From positions 8,129,744-8,193,743 of the forward strand of contig OZ199840.1 of the NCBI GenBank assembly GCA_964304625.1: 64,000 nucleotides of DNA, written 5' to 3'. Within the stretch, counting starts at the first letter, position 1; every line of letters starts with the position of its first letter. A program made the position numbers and the translations under genes. Of this stretch, positions 9,760 through 33,800 are shown one piece after another. The DNA is from Kudoa neothunni. Taxonomy: Eukaryota > Animalia > Cnidaria. A model generated the notes under the pieces. That model was not told the origin of the DNA. It did not search any database and saw nothing but the letters and a program-made list of their open reading frames with translations.

Positions 9760-10013
9760 ACTTGAGCTGCGCGCGCTCACTGCCAAGTTTGTACACGTTT
9801 TGCATCTGCTTTGGCGTGAGGTTAATAGTTGTTAAGGCGTTTAATGTCTAAATTTTATCTTTTTCTATTTTCCTTCTTATCTTTTGTGTCATTAATGTGA
9901 TTCATGCTACTTTTTAATTTATCGCACGATTTTATTTTATCTTTTCGTGTCCATCGTTAGTTTGAAATTTATGTAATAATACAATCTATAACGATAATGC
10001 TATTTAATTTTTC

Positions 10014-10090: not shown

Positions 10091-10246
10091 TCACTTTTTT
10101 CAGATCCAACGATTTAGAATGCAAAAATAATTATTTTTGTAAATTTCGATTTATCAAATGCTCAACACAAAAATAAGTATTATAGTAAACGAATTTTTTA
10201 AAAAATGAAATTCATGTTTTTGTAAAATCAAAAATTGAGGACTAAT

Positions 10247-12510
10247 TTATTTTTTTGTTAAGACCAAGAAACCGATAGCACATATCAACAGTGCAATTAA
10301 AACTCCACCAACTATCAATCTAAATTATCATTAGAACCGCATGACAGCTGAAAATATTACATAATCCTGGATCCGCCGACATTAGCGCTAAATAAAAATT
10401 AAAAATCGATTAAATAATCAGAGAGATAACTATATTACCTATTTGATGTGCCTAAAAAGAATGAGAATAAATGATTGGTTAATATAGTTTACCTTGTTTA
10501 GCAGTTTCTGGTGATGTTGGATCATCATTGTCTCTGCTCGTTCCACTCCAAAGATTCACTACGATCGGCTCACTACTGTATCTTGCCTGTACTCTCATCG
10601 AGCCTTGTTTGTAGGAAGCAGCATTATAGAAAGTTATTTCTTGGTTGCATTTTCCCTCCCATCTTGTTGTTTTATCAAATAATCCATAGGTGTATTTTAT
10701 CGCCCCATTTACTATTTCAGCAAAAGTAAAATCACATATTTGGTCTGGGTCCACTTCTGCCATAGTGGTTGTCACAATCAAATCGGTGTTATTCCATGTG
10801 TGGGTAACATTAATTTTTTGAAGCGTTTCAGCTTAATAAATGTTATTGAGGAATTCTACTGCACATTACTTGTTGATACTGCCACCACGTTTGTTTCAAG
10901 GTCACTAATATATTTGCCAAATAAATATTTGAACTCGTATTTGGTATCGGGTAAAAGATTTTTAATGATAAGTGGTTGTCCACATAAACCTGAACAATCA
11001 ACCGATTCTTCGCATTCAGAAGGACTAAAAGATGTTGCACCCTCCATTTTTTGTTGAATTTTGCAGTATACACCATCAAATAGAGGTTCGTTTGGTGCTA
11101 TAGTCATCCCTACATGTTCGTAGTATGTTTTTATCTCAGGTTTTTGTGTTATGTTGTAGTCAGCTTAATTTAATTTTAGATCAATTATTTTTTTAATTTT
11201 TACCTGTTTTAAAAAGTTTTTCTGCGATATAAGATGTAGTAGTACTACTACCGGTTTGAGTATAAGTCACTTTTGCAATGTATTTTGTGTTTGGTTCAAG
11301 CCCGTGAATCGTAGCATCAATGCAAGTTGTTGGACATACTGTTTTCAGATCTTCACTACACTTGATGTCAAGGTTTACCTTAGGGAATTCCTGCTTCCTT
11401 AACTCAATTTTACAAGTTGCAGTAGTCATATCGGTATCTTTAAGATTTTCGATAGAAAGAGTCGCATTAGTTTCTTTGGCAGTCACAGTAAGATTACTCT
11501 TTCCAACTATTTTATTACGTTAAGTTGAAAAAAATAAAAAAGTTTATTCACGTCTTAGCGTTTTCACTACTCCTACGAAATGTCTGGTGGATACTTTTAC
11601 GTCAAAATCTTTGTCATTGCTCTCAGTAAAGTCTAGTTCCATTACAGCGTCAGTGCAGAGTTGATAACAAGGGGAGTTGTCACTAGAGGTGAAGCATTTT
11701 GATGTGTAACTAGATTCAACCTTTTTTTTAATTTCGAATTTGCATATTTCATCTATCATATCTTCGTCGAAAATAATATTTATTTTGTTGGTATCATGTT
11801 TAGAAATGTGATAAGGAAGTTGTTCCAATGGACTGAAATCCATGTACTCGTTATTTTTTCTATTCACGTGTATTTTCGGTTGGTTGACTCCACAAGAGAG
11901 TTCGATTGAGTCGCCGGCTGAGTCGAAGAACCCAGTAAGGTGGTTTTCCTGGTTGCATTCGGTGTTGGGAGTAGGCGTGAACAGATCGAGGACTTTATCT
12001 CCACTGGTTAATCTGCAAGTTTGAGGATAACTGCAGACATTTTTTGTTGTGAATTTAATAGCGGTCGCATTTACTGTAAAATGAGTATTAGGAGTTTGAT
12101 CAGTAACTATAATAAAATAAGCCAAAATCTCAAAAAATATAGTACTATGAACTATTTTGAGAGTCTCGGTTGCGTATTTCGATTTTATCTGTAGATAATA
12201 AGAAGGAAAAGCAGCTCCAGTAGAAATCGTGTATTTTCCCGCACAAGAAACGTCTTGAAGTGTTTCGTTTTCAGATTCACCTTTAACATAGTGGTAAAAA
12301 AATTCATTTTTTTCCAGCAATTTAATATCGCATTTAGTTCCAGACACTCCCTCAAGTTGTAGATGGATTTTATCTTCTAAAGTGTTTTGATCTCGTTCAA
12401 CGTAGTATTTATGTGAGTGAACTAAAAAAATCTAATACGAGAGACTCGGTGACCACCCGAATTATACCATTATAGCAGAGTGAAAAAATCAACAATGTAA
12501 TGACCAACAT
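10247..12510 (-). CDS. Novel type-I membrane protein 'B1': signal peptide, six Cys-rich FN3/Ig-like modules, short stalk, TM helix, TKK tail (about 640 aa)
   Basis: ATG 12510 MLVITLLIFSLCYNVHS. Module exons separated by phase-1 GT-AG introns. FN3-like motifs IHGLEPNTKY and IKNLLPDTKYEF. Micro-exons 10439-10451 (13 nt) and 10361-10387 (27 nt) lead in frame to IILIVGGVLIALLICAIGFLVLTKK*. Confidence 0.85.
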
Positions 12511-13193
12511 TTTTGGTTCTTAATTATAACGTCTTTATTATTTTTAATAAGAATTATACAAATGAATGTAACTTGAGCTGACAATAGAAACGAGAAAAAT
12601 ATATTAAGGACGAATTCTGCGAGTGAATGACAGTTTAACAATAGAATTGAAAGTCAATAAGTAGTATTTACATCCGAAACTAAATTCTGGTGTCAGTTAT
12701 TGATAACTTCATAGGAAACAAACATGTTTAAGACAAAATTCTGAATTTAGAAGTAAAATACATTTTCTTACGGAGAATAATGACAGGACACTTCTATGTT
12801 AGCCAATTGGTAGACCAAATGGATATAATCAATAATTTTTAAAAAATTCACAAACAAGCATGTAACCTTAGATTAATTTATAGAATAAACGTTCACAAAA
12901 AATGGTTCAATGTACATCTATTTTTATAATTTTTCATTTCTATGTAGTTATTCCGATATTGTAATCAATACGATTTAATTTTATAAAAATATGTTTATCC
13001 AACAATAAACAATAAATATCATAAAAATGTCGACCAATCTAATAACTAAATATGTTATTTTATTTAAATATAAAAATACACAAGAATTAATAAGAGAAAT
13101 CAATTTTAACTATAAAACTAAAAGCTTGTTCACTGTTTCATTAATGGCGAACAATAAGATATTCCAAAATTAATGCTGTTATAATAACTATTT

Positions 13194-15212
13194 TTAGGTT
13201 CTTGTGGTGGTAACAGTGGATTCAGTTGTTGGAGTTGTAACAGTTTCTGGGTCTGCAATAAAGAGTTCCAATTCAACTGGCTCTCCATCATATCTGCGCT
13301 TTACAATCACTGTAGCCGATTTATATTCAGGAACATCGAAGAAAGTGATTCTTGAATTGCATGGCTCATTCCAACCGTTTGTTCGGTCGTGCACAGCAAG
13401 AATCTTTGCCTCCTGCTCTTTAGTTTTTTCCACAAATGTAAAGTCACAAATTCCGTCCGTTCCACCTCCTACCTTTACTGTTATTTCCAAATCATTTTCT
13501 GTCCATTTATATCCAAGTTCTACCTTTTTAAATAGAGACCCTAAAATTTATATTAATTTTTAAATTTACACCTCTATAGTACCTGTTCTAACATTTTTCG
13601 TGAGAGCTTCAGTTTCCGAGTAGAATCTCTGTGGAACTGCTTTAAAAGTGTATTCTGTATCCGGTTGCAGCTTAGTGACAGTAAATTCTGAAGTGCACAA
13701 GCCATAGCAGTTGTAGGATTCTTCACACACCGATCGAACAAAATTAATTGTGCCTTTCAATGCTTGCATTATCATACACTCTGCTTTATAGTCTTCGTGA
13801 TCTATTTGTTGTGGAACTATCACAACATTTTGAGGGTATGTTGTAATGTCAGCGGTAACATCATCAATTTTAGCTATTTATTATTATTATTAATATTCAG
13901 AAAATAAATCCTTATACCAGTTTTAAAAATTTTATTTATCTGAATCGCATTCTCATCACCACTCGAAGCTTTGTACTGTACATTAACCACATATTTGGTA
14001 TCGGCCTCAAGATGTAATAATTTTATATCATTTTCACACGAAGCAAAAACAGTATGCCCTTTTAATCCTACGTGGTTTGAGTCCACTTTGACGTAGTTCT
14101 CTTGTACAAACATTTCCACCTTGCATTGGTCACTGCCTGCATGAAGCGCAGAGACTCCCAATGTAGCCCCATATGTAAGGATATCCTTTATTTGGAAATC
14201 TTTTTTATCAGCTAACGATATAAGTTAAAATATTATTAATGATAATTAAATACTTGACATCAGCATTGATTCGGTTTCTACGCCCCTAGTGGATATTTTG
14301 ACATGAAATTCTTTATTATTGTTTTTATCATAATTTGTTTCCAATGTGACATTTTGACATATTTGGTAACAGATAATATTTTCACCAAGTTCGCATTTAG
14401 ATGTCAAAGTTTCACCTTTTTTAGCTATTTCAAACTTGCAAATCGTATCTGGAATAGGTTCTTCGAATATGATGTCTATTTTGTTATCAGTTGCATTAGC
14501 TGCGATTCTCACAGGATATCGTTTCAGTAGGTCTTTCTTATTACTTAGAAACATATTTTTATCAAAGAAAAGTTTTGGATTGTGTGGTCCACAGTAAAGT
14601 TCAAGGGGTTTATTGTAGATATTGTATAAACTTCTAAGCATGTATTCAGCACCACATTGAGGCTGTGAATCAAGGATGTAGCTCTGAACAGTAAACTGTC
14701 CAGATCTGATCTGACAAACGAAAGGAGATTCCTCGCACATGTGTTTGACGACGAATGCCACAGTTGATCCATCAAAGTGGTATGAGGAGAAGGGGACAGA
14801 TGAAGTAGCTAGAGAATAATATTAAATGAGAATGTAACTTTCGATAAATATACTGTGAACAACTTTGAGGTAGTCTGTTTTGGCTTTTGAGGCTATTTGA
14901 AGAAAATGATGAGGAGCGATGTGATCAGTATGAAAAGTGTATTCTCCGCTGCAAGGAACCTCACAAATGTTTCGACTACCACAGCTCACATCTCGATAAA
15001 AATAATAAGTATCATCTTTGGTGAATAACTTGATGCGACAAAGATGAGTTGGGTTTCCTTCTAGGGTCAAATGAATGGCATTCTTATGCAGCTGATTATC
15101 TCTTACGATGTAATACCTATGAAGTTGAACTATGTACAGAATTATTTATCGACAGTTATTCAATTAGGTCACCTGTATAAAAAAGGGTAAAGCACAAAAA
15201 AGCGAATTTCAT
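13194..15212 (-). CDS. Novel secreted paralog 'A1': signal peptide, six Cys-rich FN3/Ig-like modules, Thr-rich tail, no anchor (about 600 aa)
   Basis: ATG 15212 MKFAFLCFTLFYTVQL. Same exon layout and intron phases as B1. Motifs LHLEADTKY and VTKLQPDTEYTF. Ends PETVTTPTTESTVTTTRT*. Confidence 0.82.
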
Positions 15213-18058
15213 AATTTTGTGCTATTGCCGATCGCAAATAATGAATTCAATACGGATTAACGAACTTTTATATTATTTAGATAAGTTAATTTAGTTATTT
15301 GAGTAGGAGTGGTTAGGATTAAATAAAGGTTCTAGAAATGTAAAACAATTTTTTTAATAAACCAATGTTTCAATCTTAACTTATTGTAATATTAAAATTA
15401 CCATATGTTTTATTTTCGTAACTATAAATAATTAATTTATTGATATATTTAAAAACTTAATATCCATCGCGAACTGAAATTATTTTAGGTAGTGTCATAA
15501 AGGTAAAAATTGAGATATTTCAATGAATTATATATAAATGGAGTAATTGTACAAAGTTATTCACAATAATATAATACCATCCGAAGCGAGATCGTATATT
15601 GTCTAGGTTTACATTAATATAAACATAAATAACTGTCATTGGGGAACAAATTGAATGGTTTAAAACTTCCGATAACTCTCGTCATATACAAATATATATT
15701 ATCGTAGTTGGTTTTACCAAGAAAATAATTTAATACAAATTTTAATAATTAATTTGAATTCATGTATCATTTTAATATAATATCTCAGCTAATTATATTC
15801 AGAATGGTGAAACTATTACTTTACTGTGTTGATTAAGAAATTTTCCGTATCAATTTAAAAAATTTTTTATTGCATATTAGATCATTCATGTCGTAAAAAT
15901 AATAATATTTTTAACTTATTAAGTTATTAAAATACAACTATAAAATCCACACAGTAGAAGAAAACTTTTTGCTTTCAATTTTTTTAAACTAGCACTAATG
16001 CCCAGCATTACCTTGTATTATGTGATGGAAGATTTTAACTTCTATTTTTGAATGGAGAAATTCAACGGAAGAATTAATCTAATCAGCACATTAAACAATG
16101 TTAATTTTATTTTTCTATTTTAATTTATGCATTTTAAAACTTGTCATTATTTTTGCAATATGATGAATTAGATAAACAAAATTATGCGCACACTTTCCAT
16201 TCAAATATAAATAGAGGGAATGTTGGAAATTAATGAGTATTTTTAAGTTTATTTTTCAAGTTATTGACCCAAAATATAATTCCCTTAATTTTATGAGAAA
16301 TGTAATTAACTATTAAAGTTCATTTATTTATTAAACAACATTATTAATTAACTTAAATAGGACTTTCAGTTCTCTTAAAAATTTTGCGATAAAAATTAAT
16401 TCTTCTAGTTATAAAATTTATTATTAGTCTACAAACGATGAAAAAAATAAAATTGATCTAACATGCGTCAGAAATAAAAATAATATTACTCCTTTTTTTT
16501 ACAATTTTATAAAGGATATTAATTAATGATGTTTTAAAAAGCTGTGAGCGGTAACTTACATATTCACACTATTTAACATAATTTCCCAATTTTTAAACGA
16601 ATGCAACTTTTTTTATACAAAAATACTTACTGGTTCAAAAATGTACACATTTAATTATCAAAATACGATTAAATTTAAAGTGTAAAGGTGTGTTTGGTTT
16701 GAAGAATTACAGTAATGCTTAAAAATTTAAATATCAACATGTTTTCTCGAAGGTGTGCACCCTTGTAAAAATGAAATTTGTTTGATTGCCCTAAAAAATT
16801 TCTTTTATTGAACGATTGTTAGATTGACAAAAACTTTGTGAAAATATCGGTTAGATCGAATAAACCAATAATTTCGTATTAATTTATATGGCATGTATTG
16901 AGATTGAGAGAGGATTGTATTTTGTGCAAAAGTAATCGTGAATATAAATTCTTAAACTACGTATAGAACGCGGTTTCGCATATTTTCATGCGGATTTTAT
17001 ATCATAATGACTTAGTGCTAGCGAAAAGAAAATTATATATTGATTTGAATATTAACTTTAAGATTTGGGGTCTGGGGGTAAGGAATAATTAGGTTACTAA
17101 GAACTTAAACATGATTTAAAAAATTGTCTCATCAAATATAGAAACTTAACGAATTAATGATTCCAGCTATTTTTCAAGTAAGTTTAGGAAAACAAACAAA
17201 TGAATAAAAACTTATCGAAAACACGAATGGAGTTTCAATCTCAATCTACATATTTGATAAAAAGAAATTTTCACATCTCAGGAATTCTAATGGAGCATGA
17301 TTTTCATTTAATAAGTTATCACAAAAATTTAATTATTTGAAAACTCTACGCAGATCTTACATCGTTTTTAGAATGCTAATAGAACTACTAAATTATTCCT
17401 TAATGGTAACAATTTATAATCTCAAATTATGTGTTTTGTTCAAAATAATCGTAAGTCTTTTTGCTTAAAATGTATCTATAATGCTTTAACAATGAATCTT
17501 TATTTTAAAAAAATGTAATACGTTACAGATTTTAAGGGAAATGCAAAAACTCTCGTAAATGTAACGTTAATAGTTTAATTTGTCTTAAAATTACTCCAAA
17601 CAGACATATGTAACATTTTTGAAACATTCTACATCAAATCAAACAAATTTTCTTCGTATATATTGAGTGGAAGGTCATTATAATCGACTTTCGCTCCGAA
17701 GTAAACAAACATCAATATTATTCAGGTACTTTTTAATCTGCTATTTGAACAGACAACCAGAAAATTCCTTACTTTTTACCTCGATATTGATTATATTTTT
17801 ACTTCTAAGTAAATGAAAATTTATTATTGATGATTCCATCTATTCAAATGCAAACTAAAATATGTATTTAAAAAAAGCTGATACTTTGCACAAGCGCATT
17901 TGTGGACACGTCAGGGTTGGCAATTTCGTTCAAAAAATTTGAGGTTGTTATTTCGTTCGCGGTCGTTCATTAATACTTTGTGCAAATTTGGAGTCTTTCA
18001 AACGAACACAAACTTACCATCCCGCCCTAGACTATTGGAAGATTCTAAATATCGACAT

Positions 18059-20445
18059 TTTTCTTGTTTACAAGGTAAAGCCCAGGCGCCACTTATTAGG
18101 TTGTGGAATTCTGGTTGGTCAGACCTCTTCCATTAACGTTGTAGGCACCGCAGGACGTATCATAAAACCCCGCCCCTTGTCCTTATGTGGCTGTGCGGGA
18201 CTTTAACCCATTAAACATCCTCGTCTCAGGGCGACCACAGCCACAACCCCACACCTTATCCCTTTAACTTTGCAAGCGCTTCAAAACCGACTATACACTT
18301 AATGATTTTAGGGTCTATTAGACCACATTTTTTATTCAATATTATGAATTTTAATAATTGTTAAAACTTCATCATGTAAAAATAAAAAAATTCTATTTAC
18401 AAAATCGCACAATATTGGGAAAAAACATGTGTCGAAGTTTTCTGATACCGTCCGAATAATGTAACGGATTATATATTCTTGTTAAATAATATTTTACGAA
18501 ATATTATTCAACAAGAATTTTCAAAAATATTTAAAATAATGTGTTATAAATTATCTCATATATAATTAATTCGATTAAAACTTCACGGCACCACAAAATA
18601 ATTATCATCAAAATGAACTAAAAAGTCTCCAATGTTCAACTTAAACGCATATATCAATGTAACAGTTAATATTTTCTTTCTGTGGCCTTCCCTATTATTA
18701 TCTGCGAGTTTAAGAGAATAGTAGTACCATTATTTATATCAGATCTACAATAAAGTCGATGCTCTGCCTCTAATTAACAATTTATTATTTATGTACGTAC
18801 AAACAGAAATCTCATTCAGCAAAAATATGATAATTATAATGTAATCCATACATTTATTTTTTTCCAATGTACTGTTAAAACAAGCATCTTCAGAATGTTC
18901 TTCACAGCAATGTTTCTTACATACAACACATTTATTGTCTTACGATAACCATTTCTTGGGCTTATAGCACACTGTTTATGGGATTTTTTGGAATAATACT
19001 AGTGCTTTTTGGATTTCCTGCTCTTGATTTAGTTACAAATTTAGCGTCAAGGAACTGCTGAAGGAACGGAATGTGCTAGCGAGATTCTCTAAAAATTAGG
19101 CTCTTTTGATTTTTCCATCATTGAATATGATTTTTTACAAGCAAAACTTGTTTAAGAGATTTATGTCGATATTATAAAAAATAACTGCCGGCCCACGTAT
19201 GGAATATCTTTTTAATCTTGTGGATGTGAACATCTGATCAATCGTATCAATAGCTCATCTAATTTCGTTATAATAATTCATGCTACCTGGCTTCTTTTTT
19301 CCACCATTCAATATATTTGTATGAGCTGTTGAATTGGCTAAAATTAACAAATCCTTATTATTTTAGGGACTTAAGAGGCTAGAATTTTACTTTCATTAAA
19401 CAGAAAAAGTGTGCTAAATGTCTCCCTTGTTTTATTATTTTCATTATACGCCGATCATTCCTCTTATTAGCTCTAAATGTTCTAACCATAGTAAGAACCA
19501 TTTTCAATAACTGAAAGCTCTTTCAACAATGATTATAATAATGAAAGTCAAATATATTGGCATTACATGCAACATTACTGTAAAAATTGCCATCCAAAAA
19601 TATGTCAAAAATCCGTTATATGAAAGATTCTCTGAGCTGAAACATTCTTAAGGACAGAGGCCTACTTAAAAAGATTTCCATTAGTATTTCGGAGGTTTTT
19701 AAAGCTTCGGCAGCCCAGATAAGGTTATTGTCATCATATTCAGATAAATCAGTGACAGAATCAATAAAATCGGAGGAATCAATGATTTTACTGAAGTCGG
19801 AATTATAATCGGTGGAATGTATTTCGTTAATGGCTTCCATGAAGACAAATTTCCGTAATAAGCGCGGATCGTGTATAATTGTGTAAACTCGCTGGCAAGT
19901 ATGTCTCATTTTTCTCTTTATTTCTTCGATAGATTTTGTTAACATCCTCAATTCCATGTTATTATAATTTTATATATAAAATGATAGAATAAAATTGTGA
20001 GCTCCATTAGACCCCAAAAGCTCCAAATGTATAATTTTTATTTAATTTTTCATTCATTAATGATAATTTGAAACTTATTTGGCAGACATACAGTGTAAGA
20101 AATTTTAAAAGAATAGACCGAGTTTTAGAAAATTTAGATAATTGGAAGGGGGCAAAAACTAATCTTTAATATGGCTTGGGGTTTAATAGACCCCAAAAGC
20201 ACTCGAAAGGTTAAGGACGTTGGCTCTGAGGCCTGCAAATTACTTGCCTTTCGATGGGTTCCGGAGATTCCAATTCCAATTCACGCTCACGTCATAGCGA
20301 GTGTACATCATAACCCTAGCTCCCAAATATGGGATAGAGACCCACCGACACGGAAGCAATAGTCTAAACACCTGCGGATTCGAATCCATTACCACACGGT
20401 TCTGAGCCCGAATGTCACTCCAATGTGCTATCTGTCATCAGCTCG
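18059..20445 (-). mobile_element. tRNA-derived SINE (about 430 bp) split by a piggyBac insertion
   Basis: Minus strand 5' end has box A TAGCACATTGG (20420-20430), a tRNA-like GGGCTCAGAACC arm and box B GGATTCGAATCC (20376-20387). GC-rich body in two halves (20215-20445, 18059-18263) with an A-rich end. Flanked by 13-bp direct repeat taaatatc(g/t)acat at 18046-18058 and 20446-20458. Confidence 0.65.
18268..20210 (-). mobile_element. Degenerate piggyBac transposon
   Basis: TTAA on both sides (18264-18267, 20211-20214). Imperfect inverted ends with gggtctattagacc motifs. Decayed transposase on the minus strand, e.g. YNEI..AIDTIDQM near 19230-19275 and a Cys-rich C-terminal relic near 18900. Confidence 0.7.
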
Positions 20446-21769
20446 TAAATATCTACATCTAAGAAAGTTGGTAACAGCTATTTTTTCGAATCCTATCGGC
20501 AACTCGAGCTCCGAGAGGGTTTTTTCTAATAGCAAAAAAATCCACAAAAGAGATCGTTCACGCATAAACTCATTGACCTTGTTGAAACTACCGGTCTATT
20601 CCAACAATAAAGTTAATAAATCTAACTAATAATTATATGTAATATGAAATAGTTGTTTCTTTTTAACTTCACACCATAATCGATCTTTTAACAAATAAAA
20701 AAATTGCTTGTTCGTCTCCTTAGTCATATCTCTGACATTAAAAAATTTCTGTAACCACCTAAACCATTGGTTGTGGGAACTCTCTCATGCAATTTTCTTA
20801 AACCAGCGCTAGAAAATATACGATGGAAATGATAAAATAATATGCTATGATCGTGATAAAATATTCAAAAAATCGCTCCGATCAAGATTGAAAACGATGT
20901 TATTATTCTCCAACCTTGATCTAGCAAGCACCTAAATGCCTCAGGGATAATTAAGGAAATATCATATACCATATTTCTCACTTAGAGCTGCTTGCATAAC
21001 TATTGCGTCAATTTAAATCGTTATTCAGCCAATAAATATAAGCTTTAATTCAAATACAATTTGTTCTTGAAATTAAATACAGATGTTGTTTGTTAATATC
21101 TAATTAATTGCCACTAAAAACCAACGCTTCCTTAAACGACCGATATATTTAGATTCTCTCTGAGCGAAGACCCGTTCAGTCGAAATAATTTAATACTGTG
21201 ATTTCGTTCGTGTTGGTTCATTTTTACTTGTAAAAATTCTTGTTCATGTGAACGAACACAAACGAAACTCACAAATTTGCCACATTGGCTAAGATTATTA
21301 TGAAAGATAAAATGGTAAGAGAAACTCTAAATGGTGTCAAATTGCTGCAAGTTTTATTTATCTACTCATACTTAGAAATTCTTTTAAAGTGCAAAAATTA
21401 ATTGTTGTTCTTATTTTCGTTATTTTTTAACGAGTCTTTATTAGTCGATAACATTACTTTTATTTTGTTAACACTTACGGAGAACGTCGATATATCATGA
21501 TAATGTCATAATCGAGATTAGTCCGAGATTATTTGGCGTAATTAATAAAATATTCCAATGATTCTACTCGTTTAAATTAAATAATAGTTTGACTTCCGCA
21601 ATTAATTATTTTTTTACACACATCGGCACAATAAAAAAGTGGTATAATTTTTACCCCAAAAATGTTACGGGGGAATCGTTTTTGAGATCGTTAGGAGGTT
21701 GATATCGTTTTAATCGAAATTCAAACATCATAATTTTTTAACACTACCATCGTGATTATAACAATTTTT

Positions 21770-22007
21770 TAATCTAATTTATCAAATAAAAAATCTGAGG
21801 TCATATTGACCCCAGTGTAATCGAAGAATAGTTTTTTATAAAATTTTACAGTCATTATTTTTTATTATTTTTCGTTTGAACTACCACTAAAACAATATAG
21901 GAGAATAGATGGAACCTTGTCGCATAAAGAAGAATCCTAGAAAAGTTACTGGGGAATTAATTTGGCTTTGGGGTCATATTGACCCCAATGTCTTTAGAGG
22001 ATTAAGG
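21770..22007 (+). mobile_element. piggyBac-type right end fragment
   Basis: Two ggtcatattgacccca palindromic motifs ending ttagagga-TTAA. Same family as 25530-25619. Confidence 0.55.
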
Positions 22008-22179
22008 TGGGTTCATAAAGATCTATAATTATGTTGTAAACTGAACGTCAAATATTATTTGATAATATAATTTAAATAAAATGAGGGTAGATTAATATCT
22101 TTTTATAAATTTTGGGGTCAAACTTTATTTTTTATGATCCCGGAGGTATTACGAAAAATCGGTTACCTACTGCACAATC

Positions 22180-23386
22180 GATGACGGGTGGTTTGTAACT
22201 TTCCAAAATATGTAAAAATTAGAAATTATAAAGAAAATGAATTATTATATTTTAACTCAAAATACACATTAAGTGGACAAAGTATTAGCTGTTTAATAAC
22301 TAAATCTTGGTAATTTTTCCGTATTTTTATGGATTAGCGTGTGGTTCGTAACTTTTTGGGTGAACAAGCGTCTAGATTTTTTTGTATAAACTATTGATTG
22401 AAGATAGAAATAATCAATTACTCTGACATTTAGTCAAATGCAGAGGTAAAATCAAGAATTACAAAACTTTGTAATACATCATCCTTATCTACATTGTTTT
22501 GTTTCAAATAAAAAGGATGATATAATTGGCGCATTTAAGCACAGTTTGGTCTTAGAAAATACGCATACTTAAAAAACAATAAAGAAATGATTTTCTGTTT
22601 TTAGAAAAAGCCAGCTGTCATGTAAAATTTGAAGATTCAAATATTAAACTAATTTTTCTTCCCCAAAACACCCCGAGTGCTCTCCGACCCATAGATGTGA
22701 GCATAATATACGTGTTTAAATTCTACTATAAAGTATATACGATAAAACTCCACATTTCTTCCACCAAAGCTTCGATGAAACCTGTATCTCCAACTATTTT
22801 GAATCCTATTTTTTGATTGAAAATTCTTTGGATTCGATGACTAAATCAACTATTTTGAATTGTTTTGTTATGACGAAATCTAATCGCAAAAAATATTTCT
22901 ATTATTACTGATAATTTAAATAAAAACGACGATTAAAATTTAGAATACAAATTTTTTAATGAGATAAATGAAATGAACAATGATGAAATAATATCGAACG
23001 TCATGGCTATTGGAAATAACAATCTTTCCGATGAACATGAAAATATCAAAAAAATTAATGAATATCCAGACGATGCCACAGAAATTGAAGTCAAAGAGGA
23101 TATTTATTAGTTTAAATATAAAAAAATATTAATATTAATTCATAGAATTTTCTTATTTTATTTTGGCAAACTTAAGCAATACCATATCGAGCATGGTTCA
23201 AAAAATACGAATATACTTGCGGATATTGTAAACGAAGTACAATAAATAATTATAAAAACACGGAAAATACTAAAATTATGAAACATTTCTAATAAAAATA
23301 AATTTTATTAATTATCAACTCACCTACCCTGTGTGATTTTGAACAAGGCGCGCGCATCTTACAAAAGTTACGAACGACCCGTCATC
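22180..23386 (+). mobile_element. pogo/Tigger (Tc1-mariner superfamily) relic
   Basis: Inverted ends gatgacgggtggtttgtaacttt / aaagttacgaacgacccgtcatc followed by TA. DDE_1-like remnant IKLIFLPQNTPSALRPIDVSIIYVFKFYYK at about 22640-22735. Confidence 0.72.
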
Positions 23387-23409
23387 TACCGTATTCTTGA
23401 GGATATTAA

Positions 23410-25390
23410 TCTTTAAAGGACAACCCGGGGCTCCACGAGCCCATATACACTAACCGGATTAATTATAGTATTAATGTGTTAATTAATGCATTAATTCGTG
23501 GTCTCTCTTAACGCTAGCTGTGTTGTATAATAACGCATTGATAAGAAAAACAATAAGAATAAATATTCTACTAATTTTTTGAGATACAATTAAAACAAGT
23601 AATGTTCCTCGCGGAATGCTCGCTACATACACTTTTTTTGCAAGGGGAACACGCTTATTCCTACGAATTACGTGGCTTGGACAAAAGTGACATCGCTTTC
23701 GTCTGTTATCTTCGCAGATTTGGATTTGGTTGGATACATTATTGGAAAATTGATATCCAATAATTTCCATCGGGCGTTTCAAAGCGGGTTGGGTAGAAAT
23801 TAATGGATTTTTGAATTTTCTTTCTTGTTCACCTTTTATTAACGAATAAGACAAATCCAATAGAAATCTTTGTCTTCTACCAGTTTTATCAGTCCTCATG
23901 TAGGTAGGATTTCTATTTATGAAAATTACATATGCGTTGAATGCAGCCACATCTAATAATTGGCAAAACACCGCGAATGGCCAACGTCGACATTTCCTCT
24001 TGCAAGAATATGTTGAAACACATTGATCTAATGTGTCAACGCCACATTTTTTTTGTTTTAGTCTAAGATTGCCTGAGGCTTAGCATGGTATTCTTTACTT
24101 ACATTTTGAGTGCGGTGTTCTGATGAAAGAATAACCACTGCCTTATTTTTACGCGGAACATACGAAATAAGGTTGAGTACTTTGTAAAAACCAAATAGCG
24201 ATGAGAACATATTTCTTGATCTATGCGCCAAAAATTCTGGGGGTATAGAAGTTCTGCATTTACGCACAGTTCCAAGAATTGATGTTTTCCTTTCATACAA
24301 ATATTCAGCCAATTTCCACGAAGTAAAATAATTGTCGAAGGTGATACTACGGCCCGCATCCAAAAGGTGGTGTGTTAAATTTACCACAACATTAAAAGGT
24401 AGGTTGGATTCACGGTAACTGTCAATTTTACCCAAATATGGAATTATGTTTGAAACATAAAATGTGTCGCTGTCGCAAACAATCCATAATTTCAAACCGT
24501 ATTTCGATGGTTTTTTGGGTATGTACACTAAAAATGAAACTCGCCCCCGAAAAGGATACAGCTGTTCATCAACAGTTAAATTAGGACCTGGGATATAGCT
24601 AGTTCTACAGATGCCAGTAAATTCATCGAATATTTTTTTTATCAGTGAAAATTTATCTCCCATCTCATCGATGCCTTTGTGATTTGTGTACAACATGATT
24701 TCTTCCATCATTTGTTTAGTTATGAAATGATTGAAGCAATCAAGTGGTGTCGTCGAATCGAAAGAATCAATTGGCTTCCCTTGTACAATACTGCAGTCTA
24801 TTACATTATGACAGGAAGTTCGTCCAGGAGTGGGCTGGGAAGTCCAAATAATAGATGTGTCTTTCGACAAATAATTATTAAGGGAATCTCGAGTGTTACA
24901 GTCATGTGAAACAATTTGTGAAGAAGAATCTTGATTGAATACGTTTAGTTGTCCCTTAGATGAATCTATGAATAATGAAATTAAGATTTTATATTTTTTC
25001 GATAGACCAACCGTCAAATTCATGTAGTAAACTCTCGGTTAATTCGTTATCATCCTCCAAGAAATTTTTTAGCACGTTTGAAGATATACTTTCAGTGTCA
25101 AATGATATGTCAGTAAATAAACGGGAATCTTCCATTATAACTGTTTGGTGCAAATTTGGGATCAAATTTTGTTACGTACAAACATAACATGGGCTTAATA
25201 TATATTCCGAGAGATGAAAAAAGGTCTTAAAACCATCAAAAAAATTTTTCCCATGAATAACATCAATTGATAGATAATTAATTTTTATGAATTTACGTGA
25301 AATTTGAACCGAAAAAAACTGGTCTAACCTAACTAATTGACGATGTATCACGTGGATGGGCTCATGGAGCCCAGGGGTGTCCTTTAAGGG
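23410..25390 (-). mobile_element. piggyBac transposon with PGBD4-like transposase pseudogene
   Basis: About 35-bp TIRs (tctttaaaggacaacccggggctccacgagcccat / atgggctcatggagcccaggggtgtcctttaaggg), TTAA on the left and TTAC on the right. Motifs TVDEQLYPFRGR, KPSKYGLK, ITFDNYFTS, GVDTLDQ. Premature stop plus frameshift near 24050, a frameshifted Cys-rich domain and an apparent internal deletion. Confidence 0.93.
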
Positions 25391-25529
25391 TTACTTTAAC
25401 GACAGTTGGCCACGAGGGCGCGATGTTGCGAACGAGATTAAAGCGGATTAATTTGCCTATTTATTATTGTTTCATTCGAAAATATGCCAACAGAAAAATT
25501 TCCAAAATTTTCCAATAAGTTTATAAAAA

Positions 25530-25619
25530 TTATTAATTAAATTTATCAACGAAAAATCTGGTGTCATATTGACCCCAATGTAATCGGAGGGTAGTTTTTT
25601 TGTGTCATTAGAGGGTTAA
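25530..25619 (+). mobile_element. piggyBac-type right end fragment
   Basis: gtgtcatattgacccca ... cattagaggg-TTAA (TTAA at 25616-25619). Confidence 0.6.
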
Positions 25620-25848
25620 GGATCAAGTTATGTCGTTTGTCCCGTTAAATGTATTCTATTGAAAAAAATATAATAAAGAACACTCTAAAGTTTATTTTTA
25701 ATTTTTAAATATTTTTTGATGAAATGCAATAAATTTTTAAATATAATTAGATATATCAAATGTTCAACACAAAAATAAGTATTATAGTAAACGAATTTTA
25801 TAAAAAATGGAATTAATGTTTTTGTAAAATCAAAAATTGAGGACTAAT

Positions 25849-28107
25849 TTATTTTTTTGTTAAGACCAAGAAACCGATAGCACATATCAACAGTGCAATT
25901 AAAACTCCACCAACTATCAATCTAAATTATCATTAGAACCGCATGACAGCTGAAAATATTACATAATCCTGGATCCGCCGACATTAGCGCTAAATAAAAA
26001 TTAAAAATCGATTAAATAATCAGAGAGATAACTATATTACCTATTTGATGTGCCTAAAAAGAATGAGAATAAATGATTGGTTAATATAGTTTACCTTGTT
26101 TAGCAGTTTCTGGTGATGTTGGATCATCATTGTCTCTGCTCGTTCCACTCCAAAGATTCACTACGATCGGCTCACTACTGTATCTTGCCTGTACTCTCAT
26201 CGAGCCTTGTTTGTAGGAAGCAGCATTATAGAAAGTTATTTCTTGGTTGCATTTTCCCTCCCATCTTGTTGTTTTATCAAATAATCCATAGGTGTATTTT
26301 ATCGCCCCATTTACTATTTCAGCAAAAGTAAAATCACATATTTGGTCTGGGTCCACTTCTGCCATAGTGGTTGTCACAATCAAATCGGTGTTATTCCATG
26401 TGTGGGTAACATTAATTTTTTGAAGCGTTTCAGCTTAATAAATGTTATTGAGGAATTCTACTGCACATTACTTGTTGATACTGCCACCACGTTTGTTTCA
26501 AGGTCACTAATGTATTTGCCAAATAAATATTTGAACTCGTATTTGGTATCGGGTAAAAGATTTTTAATAATAAGTGGTTGTCCACATAAACCTGAACAAT
26601 CAACAGATTCTTCGCATTCAGAAGGACTAAAAGATGTTGCACCCTCCATTTTTTGTTGAATTTTGCAGTATACACCATCAAATAGAGGTTCGTTTGGTGC
26701 TATAGTCATCCCTACATGTTCGTAGTATGTTTTTATCTCAGGTTTTTGTGTTATGTTGTAGTCAGCTTAATTTAATTTTAGATCAATTATTTTTTTAATT
26801 TTTACCTGTTTTAAAAAGTTTTTCTGCAATATAAGATGTAGTACTACTATCGGTTTGAGTATAAGTCACTTTTACAATGTATTTTGTGTTTGGTTCAAGC
26901 CCGTGAATCGTAGCATCAATGCAAGTTGTTGGACATACTGTTTTCAGATCTTCACTACACTTGATGTCAAGGTTTACCTTAGGGAATTCCTGCTTCCTTA
27001 ACTCAATTTTACAAGTTGCAGTAGTCATATCGGTATCTTTAAGAGCCGCAATAGAAAGAGTTGCATTAGTTTCTTTGGCAGTCACCGTAAGATTACTCTT
27101 TCCAACTATATGATATTTAAATAACAATTATTAAAGAAGGTAAATTACTCCTTAGAGTTTTCTCTGCTCCTACGTGATTTCTAGTTGATACTTTTACGTT
27201 AAAATCTTTTTCCGAATTCTCATCGAAGGAAATGACCATTTCTGCGTCAGTGCAGAGTTGATAACAATCGGGGGTGGTGCCCGAGACAGAACATTTTGAA
27301 ATATAATCATTTTCATTTTTTTTTTTAATTTCAAATTTACATATTTCATCTTTCATATCTTCATCAAAAATAATATCTATTTTTCCAGTTTCTTTTTTAA
27401 CGATGTGATAAGGAAGTTGTTCCAATGGACTGAAATCCATGTACTCGTTATTTTTTCTATTCACGTGTATTTTCGGTTGGTTGACTCCACAAGAGAGTTC
27501 GATTGAGTCGCCGGCTGAGTCGAAGAACCCAGTAAGGTGGTTTTCCTCGTTGCATTCGGTGTTGGGAGTAAGCGTGAACAGATCGAGGACTTTATCTCCA
27601 CTGGTTAATCTGCAAGTTTGAGGATAACTGCAGACATTTTTTGTTGTAAATTTAATAGCGGTCGCATTTACTGTAAAATGAGTTTCAGGAGTTTGGTCAG
27701 TAACTATAAGAACATCAGCCAAAATCTCAAAAAAAATAGTACTACGAATTATTTTAAGAGTCTCGGTTGCGTATTTCGATTTTATCTGTAGATAATAAGA
27801 AGGAAAAGCAGCTCCAGTAGAAATCGTGTATTTTCCCGCACAAGAAACGTCTTGAAGTGTTTCGTTTTCAGATTCACCTTTAACATAGTGGTAAAAAAAT
27901 TCATTTTTTTCCAGCAATTTAATATCGCATTTAGTTCCAGACACTCCCTCAAGTTGTAGATGGATTTTATCTTCTAAAGTGTTTTGATCTCGTTCAACGT
28001 AGTATTTATGTGAGTGAACTAAAAAAATCTAATACGAGAGACTCGGTGACCACCCGAATTATACCATTATAGCAGAGTGAAAAAATCAACAATGTAATGA
28101 CCAACAT
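25849..28107 (-). CDS. Novel type-I membrane protein 'B2' (copy of B1 with divergent module 3)
   Basis: Same exon structure as B1 with an intact frame. ORFs 27117-27944, 26795-27127, 26458-26709 and 26081-26383 overlap its module exons. Confidence 0.85.
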
Positions 28108-28790
28108 TTTTGGTTCTTAATTATAACGTCTTTATTATTTTTAATAAGAATTATACAAATGAATGTAACTTGAGCTGACAATAGAAACGAGAAAAATATA
28201 TTAAGGACGAATTCTGCGAGTGAATGACAGTTTAACAATAGAATTGAAAGTCAATAAGTAGTATTTACATCCGAAACTAAATTCTGGTGTCAGTTATTGA
28301 TAACTTCATAGGAAACAAACATGTTTAAGACAAAATTCTGAATTTAGAAGTAAAATACATTTTCTTACGGAGAATAATGACAGGACACTTCTATGTTAAC
28401 CAATTGGTAGACCAAATGGATATAATCAATAATTTTTAAAAAATTCACAAACAAGCATGTCACCTTAGATAAATTTATAGAATAAACGTTCACAAAAAAT
28501 GATTCAATGTACATCTATTTTTATAATTTTTCATTTCTATGTAGTTATTCCGATATTGTAATCAATACGATTTAATTTTATAAAAATATGTTTATCCAAC
28601 AATAAACAATAAATATCATAAAAATGTCGACCAATCTAATAACTAAATATGTTATTTTATTTAAATATAAAAATACACAAGAATTAATAAGAGAAATCAA
28701 TTTTAACTATAAAACTAAAAGCTTGTTCACTGTTTCATTAATAGCGAACAATAAGATATTCCAAAATTAATGCTGTTATAATAACTATTT

Positions 28791-30812
28791 TTAGGTTCTT
28801 GTGGTGGTAACAGTGGATTCAGTTGTTGGAGTTGTAACAGTTTCTGGGTCTGCAATAAAGAGTTCCAATTCAACTGGCTCTCCATCATATCTGCGCTTTA
28901 CAATCACTGTAGCCGATTTATATTCAGGAACATCGAAGAAAGTGATTCTTGAATTGCATGGCTCATTCCAACCGTTTGTTCGGTCGTGCACAGCAAGAAT
29001 CTTTGTTTCCTGCTCCTTAGTTTTTTCCACAAATGTAAAGTCACAAATTCCATCCGTTCTATCTCCCACCTTTACTGTTATTTCCAAATCATTTTCTGTC
29101 CATTTATATCCAAGTTCTACCTTTTTAAATAGAGACCCTAAAATTTATATTAATTTTTAAATTTACACCTCTATAGTACCTGTTCTAACATTTTTCGTGA
29201 GAGCTTCAGTTTCCGAGTAGAATCTCTGTGGAACTGCTTTAAAAGTGTATTCTGTATCCGGTTGCAGCTTAGTGACAGTAAATTCTGAAGTGCACAAGCC
29301 ATAGCAGTTGTAGGATTCTTCACACACCGATCGAACAAAATTAATTGTGCCTTTCAATGCTTGCATTATCATACACTCTGCTTTATAGTTTTCGTGATCT
29401 ATTTGTTGTGGAACTATCACAACATTTTGAGGGTATGTTGTAATGTCAGCGGTAACATCATCAATTTTAGCTATTTATTATTATTATTATTAATATTCAG
29501 AAAATAAATCCTTATACCAGTTTTAAAAATTTTATTTATCTGAATCGCATCAGCTTCACTACTCGAAGCTTTGTACTGTACATTAACCACATATTTGGTA
29601 TCGGCCTCAAGATGTAATAATTTTATATCATTTTCACACGAAGCAAAAACAGTATGCCCTTTTAATCCTACACGGTTTGAGTCCACTTTGACGTAGTTCT
29701 CTTGTACAAACATTTCCACCTTGCATTGGTCACTGCCTGCATGAAGCGCAGAGACTCCCAATGTAGCCCCATATGTAAGGATATCCTTTATTTGGAAATC
29801 TTTTTTATCAGCTAACGATATAAGTTAAAACATTATTAATGATAATTAAATACTTGACATCAACATTGATTCGGTTTCTACACCTCTAGCGGATATTTTG
29901 ACATGAAATTCTTTATTACTGCTTTTATTATAATCTGTTTCCATTGTAACATTTTGACATATTTGGTAACATTTAATACCATCACCGAGTCCGCATTTAG
30001 ATTCTAAAGTTCCATCTTTTTTAACAATTTCAAATTTGCAAATAGTGTCGGGAATAGGTTCTTCGAATATGATGTCTATTTTGTTATCAGCTGCATTAGC
30101 TGCGATTCTCACAGGATATCGTTTCAGTAGGTCTTTCTTATTACTTAGAAACATATTTTTATCAAAGAAAAGTTTTGGATTGTGTGGTCCACAGTAAAGT
30201 TCAAGGGGTTTATTGTAGATATTGTATAAACTTCTAAGCATGTATTCAGCACCACATTGAGGCTGTGAATCAAGGATGTAGCTCTGAACAGTAAACTGTC
30301 CAGATCTGATCTGACAAACGAAAGGAGATTCCTCGCACATGTGTTTGACGACGAATGCCACAGTTGATCCATCAAAGTGGTATGAGGAGAAGGGGACAGA
30401 TGAAGTAGCTAGAGAATAATATTAAATGAGAATGTAACTTTCGATAAATATACTGTGAACAACTTTGAGGTAGTCTGTTTTGGCTTTTGAGGCTATTTGA
30501 AGAAAATGATGAGGAGCGATGTGATCAGTATGAAAAGTGTATTCTCCGCTGCAAGGAACCTCACAAATGTTTCGACTACCACAGCTCACATCTCGATAAA
30601 AATAATAAGTATCGTCTTTGGTGAATAACTTGATGCGACAAAGATGAGTTGGGTTTCCTTCTAGGGTCAGATGAATGGCATTCTTATGCAGCTGATTATC
30701 TCTTACGATGTAATACCTATGAAGTTGAACTATGTACAGAATTATTTATCGACAGTTATTCAATTAGGTCACCTGTATAAAAAAGGGTAAAGCACAAAAA
30801 AGCGAATTTCAT
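28791..30812 (-). CDS. Novel secreted paralog 'A2' (copy of A1 with divergent module 3)
   Basis: Same exon structure as A1. ORFs 29846-30361, 29471-29761, 29163-29420 and 28791-29087. Confidence 0.82.
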
Positions 30813-33800
30813 AATTTTGTGCTATTGCCGATCGCAAATAATGAATTCAATACGTATTAACGAACTTTTATATTATTTAGATAAGTTAATTTAGTTATTT
30901 GAGTAGGAGTGGTTAGGATTAAATAAAGGTTCTAGAAATGTAAAACAATTTTTTTTTAATACACCAATGTTTCACATCTTAACTTATTGTAATATTAAAA
31001 TTACCATATGTTTTATTTTCGTAACTATAAATAATTAATTTATTGATAGATTTAAAAACTTAATATCCATCGCGAACTGAAATTATTTTAGGTAGTATCA
31101 TAAAGGTAAAAATAGAGATATTTCAATGAATTATATAAATGGAGAATTTGCACAAAGTTATTCACAATAATATAATACCATCCGAAGCGAGATCGTATAT
31201 TGTTTAGATTTACATTAATATAAACATAAATAACTGTCATTGGGGAACAAATTGAATGGTTTAAAACTTCCGATAACTCTCGTCATATACAAATATATAT
31301 TATCGGAGTTGGTTTTACAAAGAAAATAATTTAATACAAACTTGAATAATTAATTTGAATTCATGTATCATTTTAATATAATATCTCAACTAATTATATA
31401 CAGAATGGTGAAACTATTACTTTACTATGTTGATTAAGAAATTTGAATTATAAAATTACAAAATATTTCGTTACCTATTAGATCATTTATTTCATAAAAA
31501 TTAATAATTTTCCTTAGTGAATTCAATTATTATTAATATTTAAGGTTAAATACATTTATAAATTCTTCATGATACCGATGAAGTCATTACTTTCAATCTT
31601 TTTAAATTTAAAGCGTTGAAAATTATAAAACATTTGAACAAGTAAATTAAATACAAATTTTAAAAATAAATTTTTGAGTAAAACAATAATATACTCATCT
31701 CCAAATCCTCTGAAACCCGATCCAACCTATTAAAACGACCCCTCGTGTTAATTCAGATCTACCAGAACTTAAATATTCATATACTTTGTTACATGAAACA
31801 CATTTTAATCAGTTAAAACTATTATATTAGATGAATAAAATAAAATATAATTATTAATAAATTTTCCAGTAGGAATTGAATAATTTGAGCAACGTTCTTG
31901 TTGGCCACCGGAAAAGTTATCGACAAAAAATATTTTAATTATTTTATAAAAGTCAATATAAAAATTTTTCCTTATTATTCTGATACAAAATAAAAGGAAA
32001 GGTGCAAATTTTTTGTTTATTTGGTTTTCATTTCATAATTCAAAGGATGACCCAAAATTTCTTTTAGAAGTTTTTTAGTGATTTTTTCATAAAGAAAATT
32101 TTAATATTTCTACATGTGACTAATTTCTACGAGGTATCACTGAGACATTTTGAACGAGCAATAAAGATTAATTTTACGCTTTAAACCTTTTTCTTCAAAT
32201 TATGAGGAAAAACTAGCAGTCATTTAAGTGCAGATTTTATATATCTATCAATTAAATTTTTAAAGAAGAATGATCATATTTTAAACTTATTTTGTTTAGA
32301 TCTCTTGTAAAAAATACTCATCTCTAGTTATTCGCATTAATTTAAATTTAAAGTGATTTATAAATTGCTGAAAGACTATAATATCGACCTCAATTAGTTT
32401 GGTGTAGAAAACACCCAAGAAACTTTTGAGTGTTTCAAATAAATAATCTTATTATTAATTTATATTAAATATGTTATTAGTCATATAAAACAGGATGGAT
32501 AATTTATAAATATCTGTGTTACAGTTGACGAATTTTCCCTTATTTACTTAAGGTATCTTACCAAAATCTCGAAAAAACTAAAGTTACATTAGGAAATATT
32601 AGATTTGTATCCTAACAAAATCCTTCTTATACAAAACAACCATATTCTAAAATAATTTGTTGCATAACCAATAAAAATAAGTCAGTTATATTTATATTAA
32701 AAAAATAAAGAATGAATTAAAATAGGGAATCTTGCACATAGGTTTTCAAGGTCTCAAACACAATTCCTATAAAAATATTTCTTCCCAAAAAATTGTTGAA
32801 ATAAACATTATTTTATCGTCATTAAAACTATCTCGAAAAATGGACCAAAAATTATTTAAATTATTCAAAAATATAATCAGGAAAACCTGGATTAAGTTAT
32901 TTAATAATTCTCATGGTATACCCCCCAGATTAAATTCATATTACCCCTTTTATTTTTATTAAGGGTCGAGTTTTATTTATTTATTCAAAAATATTTTAAA
33001 TGTTCATTGCAAATTGATTTTTACACTTTTAAAAATCAGATTTCTTTGAATATAAGGCAGTATTTAAGAATGTTAGTGCACAATAAATGAGCTTACTCTC
33101 ATCTCATATTTACACCATTTATTGGCCAAATAAGTTATAGTTTATAAACAGTGTTAGAATTAACACTTCAATGTCAAATTCCAAATTTTTGGATAAATTC
33201 TTAGAACTTATTCTTCAAAACAACCACAGGATATTTCTTAACAAATTTTCACGAAAATAATGATACGTTCATTAAAGAGATGCTGAAAGCTTCTTTAGTT
33301 TAGAACCCGCTATCGCCAGCTTTTGGTGTATTATAACACCAATAGTAAACTAAAAACAACCTGTTATGATACTTATAGATCTTATCTTTATAGAAAGCCG
33401 AGTATAATGTAGTTCAAAAATAGTTATTCGTTATAAAATTAAAAATAAAATATATTCAGCTATCAAAGTAAAAATCAAGTTTGACTGTAGAGTTTCAGTA
33501 ATAATAAATAATAGATGCGAAATACGATTTTATTGTTCTATATAACTTTGAATGTCTGTTAAACAAAACTAGAGACTATTATCGAAAAATCGATCATTTA
33601 ATTCCATATTTGTATTTCATTATTTCAACATAACAAGCAAATACAGATCGCATTGTAATCATGCTTGTATTTTAGGATTATTTTTGTATTATCCTACTTG
33701 AAACGAGTGATTATCATGTTTTTAGAATTAGATTATTAAAAAAATCATTATTTTTACGATTCGAACGTGTAGATAAATTTTATTTATATTCTAAGAATAT

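Follow-up and report, generated by a model that had tools for sequence, protein, structure and literature searches.

Contig 3 (OZ199840.1) of the 40.26-Mb Kudoa neothunni assembly, which comprises four contigs (17.15, 12.04, and 11.05 Mb, and one of ~18 kb), was analyzed over a stretch of 64,000 nucleotides (nt) at positions 8129744-8193743, hereafter the window. The window carries two copies of a gene cassette of approximately 5.8 kb, each with two intact minus-strand genes: gene A, whose product is predicted to be secreted, and gene B, whose product is predicted to be a type I membrane protein. Both genes encode a chain of six Cys-containing modules (M1-M6). Nearly all of the cassette is almost identical between the two copies, except for islands of divergence centered on the third module of both genes, and such islands recur in other cassettes of the same genome. 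These genes probably constitute a lineage-specific variable recognition family, in which gene conversion would keep the scaffold uniform, while M3-M4, as the likely binding region, would be kept distinct and occasionally reshuffled; the probability of this reading is put at roughly 0.55.

Self-BLAST of the window, which has a GC content of ~30%, reveals the cassette as its only long repeat, with 96.4% identity across 5781 columns and 9.8 kb of non-duplicated DNA between the copies (Table 1). In 50-nt bins, identity is 96-100% nearly throughout, with the exception of 11417-11817 in B and 14264-14464 in A; an earlier note on this DNA, made from the letters alone, had described modules 5 and 6, the transmembrane segment, most introns, and the intergenic DNA of the copies as essentially identical. 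There are 202 substitutions between the cassettes, 113 of which fall within 569 nt made up of B M3 (68 in 262 nt), the intron after it (16 in 45 nt), and A M3 (29 in 262 nt), against 89 in the remaining 5197 nt. A binomial test against the rate in the remainder of the cassette gives P = 2e-58 for B M3 and P = 4e-15 for A M3. At the protein level, 30 of 86 M3 residues differ between B1 and B2 and 15 of 86 between A1 and A2, against 0-7 and 0-5, respectively, in each remaining module, which is very close to what the earlier note had counted (about 30 and about 15, with all four Cys kept). The 5′ edge of the B1 island is sharp and coincides with the M2/M3 boundary, where no intron lies.

In the spliced gene models, all frames are intact and every intron is GT-AG, so that the four intact paralogs named in the earlier note (B1, A1, B2, and A2) are borne out, and its outer limits coincide with the stop codon of B1, which ends at 10247, and the ATG of A2 at 30812. 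Introns are 38-46 nt long and in phase 1, save for the last B intron, which is 119 nt long and in phase 2. One exon each encodes M1, M4, M5, and M6, while exon 3 is shared by M2 and M3; the modules hold two or four Cys. B has a single hydrophobic window at residues 604-631, a C-terminal helix that is followed by a 3-residue tail. A has no C-terminal hydrophobic helix according to the hydrophobicity scan, and its end is Thr-rich; the signal peptides of both were assigned from visual inspection and hydrophobicity only. At 30% identity to each other, A and B are old paralogs.

Exon-level matches throughout the genome amount to about 20 B-type and 9 A-type genes, and the loci that were fetched include intact models of at least 12 B and at least 6 A genes with a like exon structure. 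Contig 1 has units of B plus A at 2.78 Mb (86% identical), 17.10 Mb, and 6.04 Mb, contig 3 has one at 2.28 Mb, and contig 2 has several at 7.99-8.20 Mb; the adjacency of A and B is kept in at least eight cassettes, and B-only loci occur at other places. In comparisons of 55 B pairs and 15 A pairs, both the lowest amino-acid identity (0.64 in B and 0.69 in A) and the highest ratio of nonsynonymous to synonymous differences per site (pN/pS; 0.44 and 0.48) belong to M3, with M4 next (pN/pS 0.32 and 0.43). The pN/pS values of M1, M2, M5, and M6 are 0.15-0.33, and M1 is among the most conserved modules of the family. The earlier note had proposed comparing module diversity over a larger paralog set, and an even spread was not found: M3 and then M4 are the most divergent, and the islands recur. 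In addition, more than 100 weaker genome-wide matches (E 1e-10 to 1e-2) to 4-Cys FN3-like modules, often clustered (e.g., contig 3 at 8.59-8.75 Mb, contig 2 at 9.8 Mb, and contig 1 at 16.3-16.5 Mb), point to a possible much larger superfamily.

A divergence peak at M3 and then M4 is found in both genes of the window pair (W1-W2), of three pairs on contig 2 (L005-L006, L005-L007, and L006-L007), and of L014-L015 on contig 1; L002-L003, which lie on different contigs, have the same peak in gene B only. The islands thus recur in five pair comparisons beyond that of the window, in approximately four independent groups if the window pair is included, and the frameworks of these cassette pairs are 96-100% identical. 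In L014-L015, the frameworks are 99-100% identical, the A-B intergenic DNA only 83%, and M3 85-89%; here the genes have clearly been homogenized, and M3 shows roughly the true age. A permutation test yields significant shared tracts in several pairs, and A_L005 M3 is a mosaic, L006-like over nt 9-109 and L007-like over nt 100-166. L002 (contig 1, 17.10 Mb) and L003 (contig 3, 2.28 Mb) have the same 5′-truncated A pseudogene with stops and are 95-98% identical outside B M3/M4, a likeness that would imply recent dispersal or conversion between chromosomes. The M3 of their A pseudogene is 97% identical, similar to the neighboring neutral DNA, whereas B M3 is 74% identical. Though a single case, this would fit selection that keeps only working M3s apart.

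The islands are old sequence lineages inside young or homogenized sequence and not the product of recent replacement change, because synonymous sites and the adjacent intron have diverged like replacement sites. The synonymous rate (dS) of M3 is 0.72 between B1 and B2 and 0.27 between A1 and A2, against 0-0.08 in the other modules, and the ratio of nonsynonymous to synonymous rates (dN/dS) of M3 is 0.35 and 0.33, respectively. Of the three codon positions, the third has the most differences, and the substitution spectrum matches that between distant paralogs. The earlier note had described two genes diversifying the same module; the pattern is real, and these rates do not show the copies to be actively diversifying. 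Recent import of M3 from an existing paralog was rejected, as the genome holds no close donor copy: genome-wide, the best match is 78-81% identical to either B island and 83% identical to either A island. Contig 2 serves as a control, as the two cassettes of its 15.2-kb tandem duplication show zero differences, M3 included, and duplication as such therefore does not trigger M3 change. This duplication (8170000-8201000; loci L020, L004, L019, and L005) is contiguous, at 98% identity; its differences are concentrated in the unit's first 3 kb, and the A gene of the first copy is cut short at the right breakpoint. The 15.6-kb spacing that the window shares with contig 2 is a coincidence: on contig 2 it reflects the contiguous tandem duplication of 15.2 kb, and the spacers bear no relation to each other.

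These data bear on the proposal that the cassette was recently duplicated and that M3 then changed at a locally accelerated pace, through targeted hypermutation or a burst of positive selection. The near-identical background of the two copies would be expected under this proposal, and B M3 of L002-L003 is ~5-fold more diverged than the adjoining pseudogene and intergenic DNA. However, divergence at synonymous sites and in the intron is as high as that at replacement sites, no mutational signature is present, the recent contig 2 duplicates are identical throughout, and the M3 divergence of L014-L015 is close to that of their intergenic DNA. Hypermutation was rejected on the basis of dS, the intron, codon positions, the substitution spectrum, and the contig 2 duplicates, and accelerated change as a whole is considered very improbable. 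Still less probable is an assembly artefact, in which the second cassette would be a retained haplotype or a collapsed repeat and the islands allelic. The almost identical background would agree with this, but 9.8 kb of unique DNA with a piggyBac-like transposase lies between the copies, their outer flanks are unrelated, and several other pairs, some of them on different contigs, display the same pattern.

The fold of the modules provides a frame for locating this variation. Database searches and structure predictions were run on single exons, which were joined only in scripts for frames and substitution rates. The AlphaFold2 (AF2) model of M2 and M3 (mean confidence, pLDDT, 73) retrieves in Foldseek the tandem FN3 domains of OSMR, LIFR, IFNGR, PTP-delta, titin, and sDscam with E-values of 7e-5 to 1e-3, although the template modeling (TM) scores are only 0.3-0.44. 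The M1 model (pLDDT 85) is a seven-strand immunoglobulin (Ig)-like sandwich with weak matches (E 3e-3). The structures closest to this module, which exon 2 encodes in both genes (12468-15173), are those of flavivirus envelope protein domain III; these matches are again weak (E 3e-3, TM-score 0.5), and the likeness is read as a generic Ig-like resemblance of the model. Matches from the ESM Atlas, which was searched by features and shape, are likewise generic FN3-like sandwiches. The M1 and M2-M3 models thus fall within the FN3/Ig-like beta-sandwich fold class. In Pfam, fn3 (PF00041) does not reach its gathering threshold of 25 bits, the best score being 18.0 bits (E 0.003) for B1 M4; M5 has sub-threshold fn3 matches in 8 of 19 members (best E 0.0047), there is no fn3 match for M1, M2, M3, or M6, and M6 has no Pfam match of any kind. 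When the module profiles are compared with one another, M4 is related to M5 (E 8.5e-5) and M3 and M4 align in register (E 0.02), and M1 and M6 are not linked to the remaining modules. Six Cys-rich beta-sandwich-like modules behind a signal peptide, as the earlier note had it, therefore hold for M1 (Ig-like) and M2-M3 (FN3-like) in the AF2 models; M4 and M5 have sub-threshold fn3 matches, and M6 has none.

At the sequence level, an exon 3 profile searched against 1.84 billion representative proteins returns eight matches (best E 7e-11), all unnamed single-contig fragments. These fragments (P0001-P0008) come from metagenome or SRA assemblies and carry the M3 framework motif, a Cys-Lys-Phe strand and a later Cys pair. 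The contigs that carry P0001 and P0008 (L022 and L023) are of this kind, and the family therefore exists in at least a few other organisms. Pfam, the 1.84-billion-protein profile search, and the ESM Atlas yield no named family and no match to a conserved housekeeping receptor, a possibility that the earlier note had raised, and literature searches on the family returned nothing specific. The family is a sequence orphan with a common fold.

Within M3, the alignment of 19 family members shows that all four Cys are invariant (19 of 19) and that the B and C strands, a C-Y-Q-x-C turn, and the F strand form an invariant framework with variable segments in between. On the AF2 model, the variable segments correspond to the A-B turn, the C-to-E stretch, the E-F loop, and the F-G loop; the long C-to-E stretch holds three of the four Cys. 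Framework dN/dS is 0.1-0.25; in the three long loops of gene A it is 0.9-1.3, a value biased upward because the loops were partly picked after viewing the alignment. In M4 of both genes, variation is located in the putative BC loop and in the putative FG loop, which also has indels; the FG assignment was made from the FN3 sequence pattern, not from a model. In a chain with FN3 topology, each domain presents its CC′ and EF loops to the BC and FG loops of the domain that follows it, and cytokine receptors bind their ligand through loops at the elbow between two FN3 domains. A composite binding site formed by M3 and M4, which are encoded by separate exons, is suspected from this analogy, with an elbow geometry that would be that of FN3 chains.

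According to the reading that is preferred here, the cassette would provide a secreted A protein and a type I membrane B protein in two copies, with ectodomains formed by six disulfide-containing modules, four of which are shown or suggested as Ig/FN3-like sandwiches. Interlocus gene conversion, or recent duplication followed by conversion, would hold exons, introns, and intergenic DNA near-identical. M3 and the adjoining M4 loops would escape this homogenization and carry old lineages that are at times recombined piecewise. M3-M4 could then be the specificity-determining, ligand-binding part, and copies that lose a distinct M3 may be selected against, leaving a panel of binding specificities on a constant scaffold.

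Several points weigh against this. The dN/dS of M3 as a whole is below 1, and even the post-hoc B loops, biased upward as they are, reach only 0.5-0.6, so that positive selection is not demonstrated. The rates themselves (Nei-Gojobori, NG86) are rough, as the genome is AT-rich and dS is near saturation. The argument from L002-L003 is weakened in that B_L003 looks frameshifted. Furthermore, a fast-evolving module that blocks conversion through its own divergence would look similar. Gene conversion is blocked by sequence divergence, and M3, together with M4, could merely be the least constrained part of the protein, in which drift raised divergence until mismatch-limited conversion stalled, with no selection for diversity. 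The dN/dS of M3 (0.33-0.48), the values of the B loops, and an ordinary substitution spectrum are all consistent with such passive islands. On the other hand, the homologous module is spared in two genes that are only 30% identical, and in each of the approximately four cassette groups independently. In W1-W2 and L002-L003, moreover, unconstrained intergenic or pseudogene DNA has been homogenized by conversion or duplication to 95-99%, with B M3 left at 74%, and the three long loops of A have dN/dS values near or above 1, though chosen post hoc. Passive islands are therefore regarded as unlikely.

A narrower form of the recognition hypothesis is that each cassette encodes a private lock-and-key pair, in which secreted A would bind the anchored B of its own cassette via M3-M4 and both islands would co-evolve. 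A need to keep matched partners unmixed would account for the sparing of the same module from homogenization in both genes. This variant is considered quite unlikely; if true, the cassettes would represent matched recognition specificities (kin, self, gamete, or cell-cell identity) and a TgrB1/TgrC1-like system built on an FN3 scaffold in an animal-like genome.

The recurring M3 pattern suggests a variable binding site and does not show antigenic variation. In its strict form, antigenic variation would require an archive of surface coats of which one is expressed at a time, with M3 as the exposed epitope region. The number of intact paralogs is what such an archive would call for, the structure is mosaic and conversion-shaped, the framework is constant with variable loops, and B has a very short cytoplasmic tail, as do some protozoan coat proteins. 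However, the variable module is third of six and not the membrane-distal tip, half of each cassette is a secreted protein, and neighboring genes look to be of metazoan type (a GalNAc-transferase with a ricin domain). The loci are also dispersed, with no expression-site or telomeric features among those examined. Strict antigenic variation is thus decidedly improbable.

The surroundings of the cassettes contain further elements. Immediately downstream of B1, exons with an LRR_9 match (E 7e-9) at 9406-9786 (-) resemble U2 snRNP A′ and mark the left edge of the duplicated unit. Within the unique spacer between the cassettes lies a piggyBac-type transposase at 23483-25023 (-) with a DDE_Tnp_1_7 match (E 3e-39), which consists of two reading frames (321 and 162 aa) and is hence interrupted or intron-containing. 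An 82-nt direct repeat (83% identical) occurs at 21756-21837 and 25521-25600, the second copy ~150 nt before the edge of cassette 2. A polypeptide GalNAc-transferase-like gene of at least three exons lies 3 kb past cassette 2, at 34365-36300 (+); its Glycos_transf_2, Glyco_transf_7C, and ricin B lectin domains form an animal-type architecture. Marker searches returned no SL1 sequence or SL1 RNA and no Col_cuticle_N, TTR-52, or Chitin_bind_4, although these negatives are weak because the controls gave no usable signal; a nematode or arthropod origin, first suggested by introns of roughly 42 nt, is not supported.

Table 1. Features of the two cassette copies, in window positions (aa, amino acids; TM, transmembrane; HSP, high-scoring segment pair).
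Feature	Position	Strand	Description
Cassette copy 1	10145..15910	(-)	A1 upstream, B1 downstream, on one strand; from self-BLAST HSP and identity profile
Gene B1	10247..12510	(-)	8 exons (12510-12468, 12421-12146, 12106-11552, 11506-11204, 11163-10870, 10831-10493, 10451-10439, 10319-10247); 631 aa; six modules, short stalk, TM helix, 3-residue tail
B1 module 4, putative FG loop	11217..11267 (approximate)	(-)	Small second variable patch, with a 3-nt indel
B1 module 4, start	11417..11506	(-)	A/B strands and start of BC loop; tail of the island
B1 intron 3	11507..11551	(-)	Within the island; differences from the 43-nt B2 intron (27106-27148) at 16 of 45 positions
B1 module 3	11552..11813	(-)	Second half of exon 3; dS 0.72, dN 0.25
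A-B intergenic spacer	12511..13193	(-)	99% identity between the two cassettes
Gene A1	13194..15212	(-)	6 exons (15212-15173, 15129-14854, 14808-14254, 14211-13918, 13873-13583, 13540-13194); 600 aa; six modules, Thr-rich C-terminus, no TM helix
A1 module 4, putative FG loop	13914..13964 (approximate)	(-)	Small second variable patch, at the homologous place
A1 module 3	14254..14515	(-)	Island; differences cluster at 14264-14464; dS 0.27, dN 0.09
Cassette copy 2	25747..31511	(-)	Holds A2 and B2; from self-BLAST HSP and identity profile
Gene B2	25849..28107	(-)	630 aa; exon structure as B1, projected from B1; frame intact, all introns GT-AG
B2 module 3	27149..27410	(-)	Counterpart of the B1 module 3 island
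Gene A2	28791..30812	(-)	600 aa; exon structure as A1; frame intact
A2 module 3	29854..30115	(-)	Counterpart of the A1 module 3 island

Several known systems resemble the family in part, and it has the defining features of none of them. The tgrB1/tgrC1 genes of Dictyostelium are an adjacent pair with Ig-like-fold repeats from a large family that duplicates and recombines rapidly; here, too, the pair is duplicated as a unit and both partners are variable (PMC12745789). Tgr variation is allelic, at an unstable locus (PMC12745789), in contrast to the divergence between paralogs in one module of a homogenized scaffold that is seen here. Furthermore, both Tgr proteins are membrane-bound and consist of IPT/TIG repeats, whereas one partner here is predicted to be secreted and the modules are FN3-like; the only Pfam match in this direction, TIG_plexin in one module (E 0.16, 12 bits), is noise.

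Alr1 and Alr2 of Hydractinia and the Alr complex encode type I membrane proteins with tandem beta-sandwich domains, and share with the present family many paralogs and one hypervariable domain on a conserved body (PMC9546547; PMC8282982). They differ in their V-set-like IgSF domains and homophilic binding, while the variable module here is third of six, FN3-like, and accompanied by a secreted paralog; Pfam gives no IgSF match beyond noise (I-set E 0.09). The variable domain of the Alr proteins is membrane-distal, and the Alr family is marked by extreme allelic polymorphism and homophilic binding in trans.

The tall class I cytokine receptors (LIFR, OSMR, and gp130 type) are likewise type I membrane proteins, with chains of FN3 modules, and provide the best structural matches to M2-M3 (E 2e-4 to 4e-4), and the variable CC′/EF loops of M3 and BC/FG loops of M4 would lie at an elbow of the kind with which these receptors bind. 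On the other hand, the Cys pattern is unlike theirs, the fn3 sequence matches are sub-threshold, the WSxWS motif is absent from A1, A2, B1, and B2, and the JAK-binding Box1/Box2 signaling region is absent, as the tail of B has 3 residues and A is without a TM helix. The 6-Cys proteins of Plasmodium (P12-P41 and P48/45-P230) also consist of tandem Cys-containing beta-sandwich modules, and their anchored and secreted paralogs, often adjacent, form surface heterodimers. Their s48/45 fold and Cys pattern are unlike those of the present family, and they have no comparable single hypervariable module; no Pfam match to the s48/45 domain was obtained, and the modules carry two or four Cys, not six.

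The pattern of variation has its parallel in MHC, KIR, and plant NLR genes, where conversion homogenizes introns and framework exons and the ligand-contact segments keep old mosaic diversity. Those families belong to unrelated folds and organisms, and positive selection at the contact sites has been demonstrated in them, unlike here. The ~30 or more intron-rich genes of the present family, along with many distant 4-Cys FN3-like genes, will be missed by homology-based annotation. Unusual features are that a secreted and an anchored gene form a pair that behaves as a unit and that the protected region is the homologous module in both genes, and they make the family a clean system in which to study how diversity persists under concerted evolution. 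If the reading holds, the cassettes would belong to an undescribed, sequence-orphan recognition family in a compact genome, with a signature like that of MHC, KIR, NLR, Alr, and Tgr.

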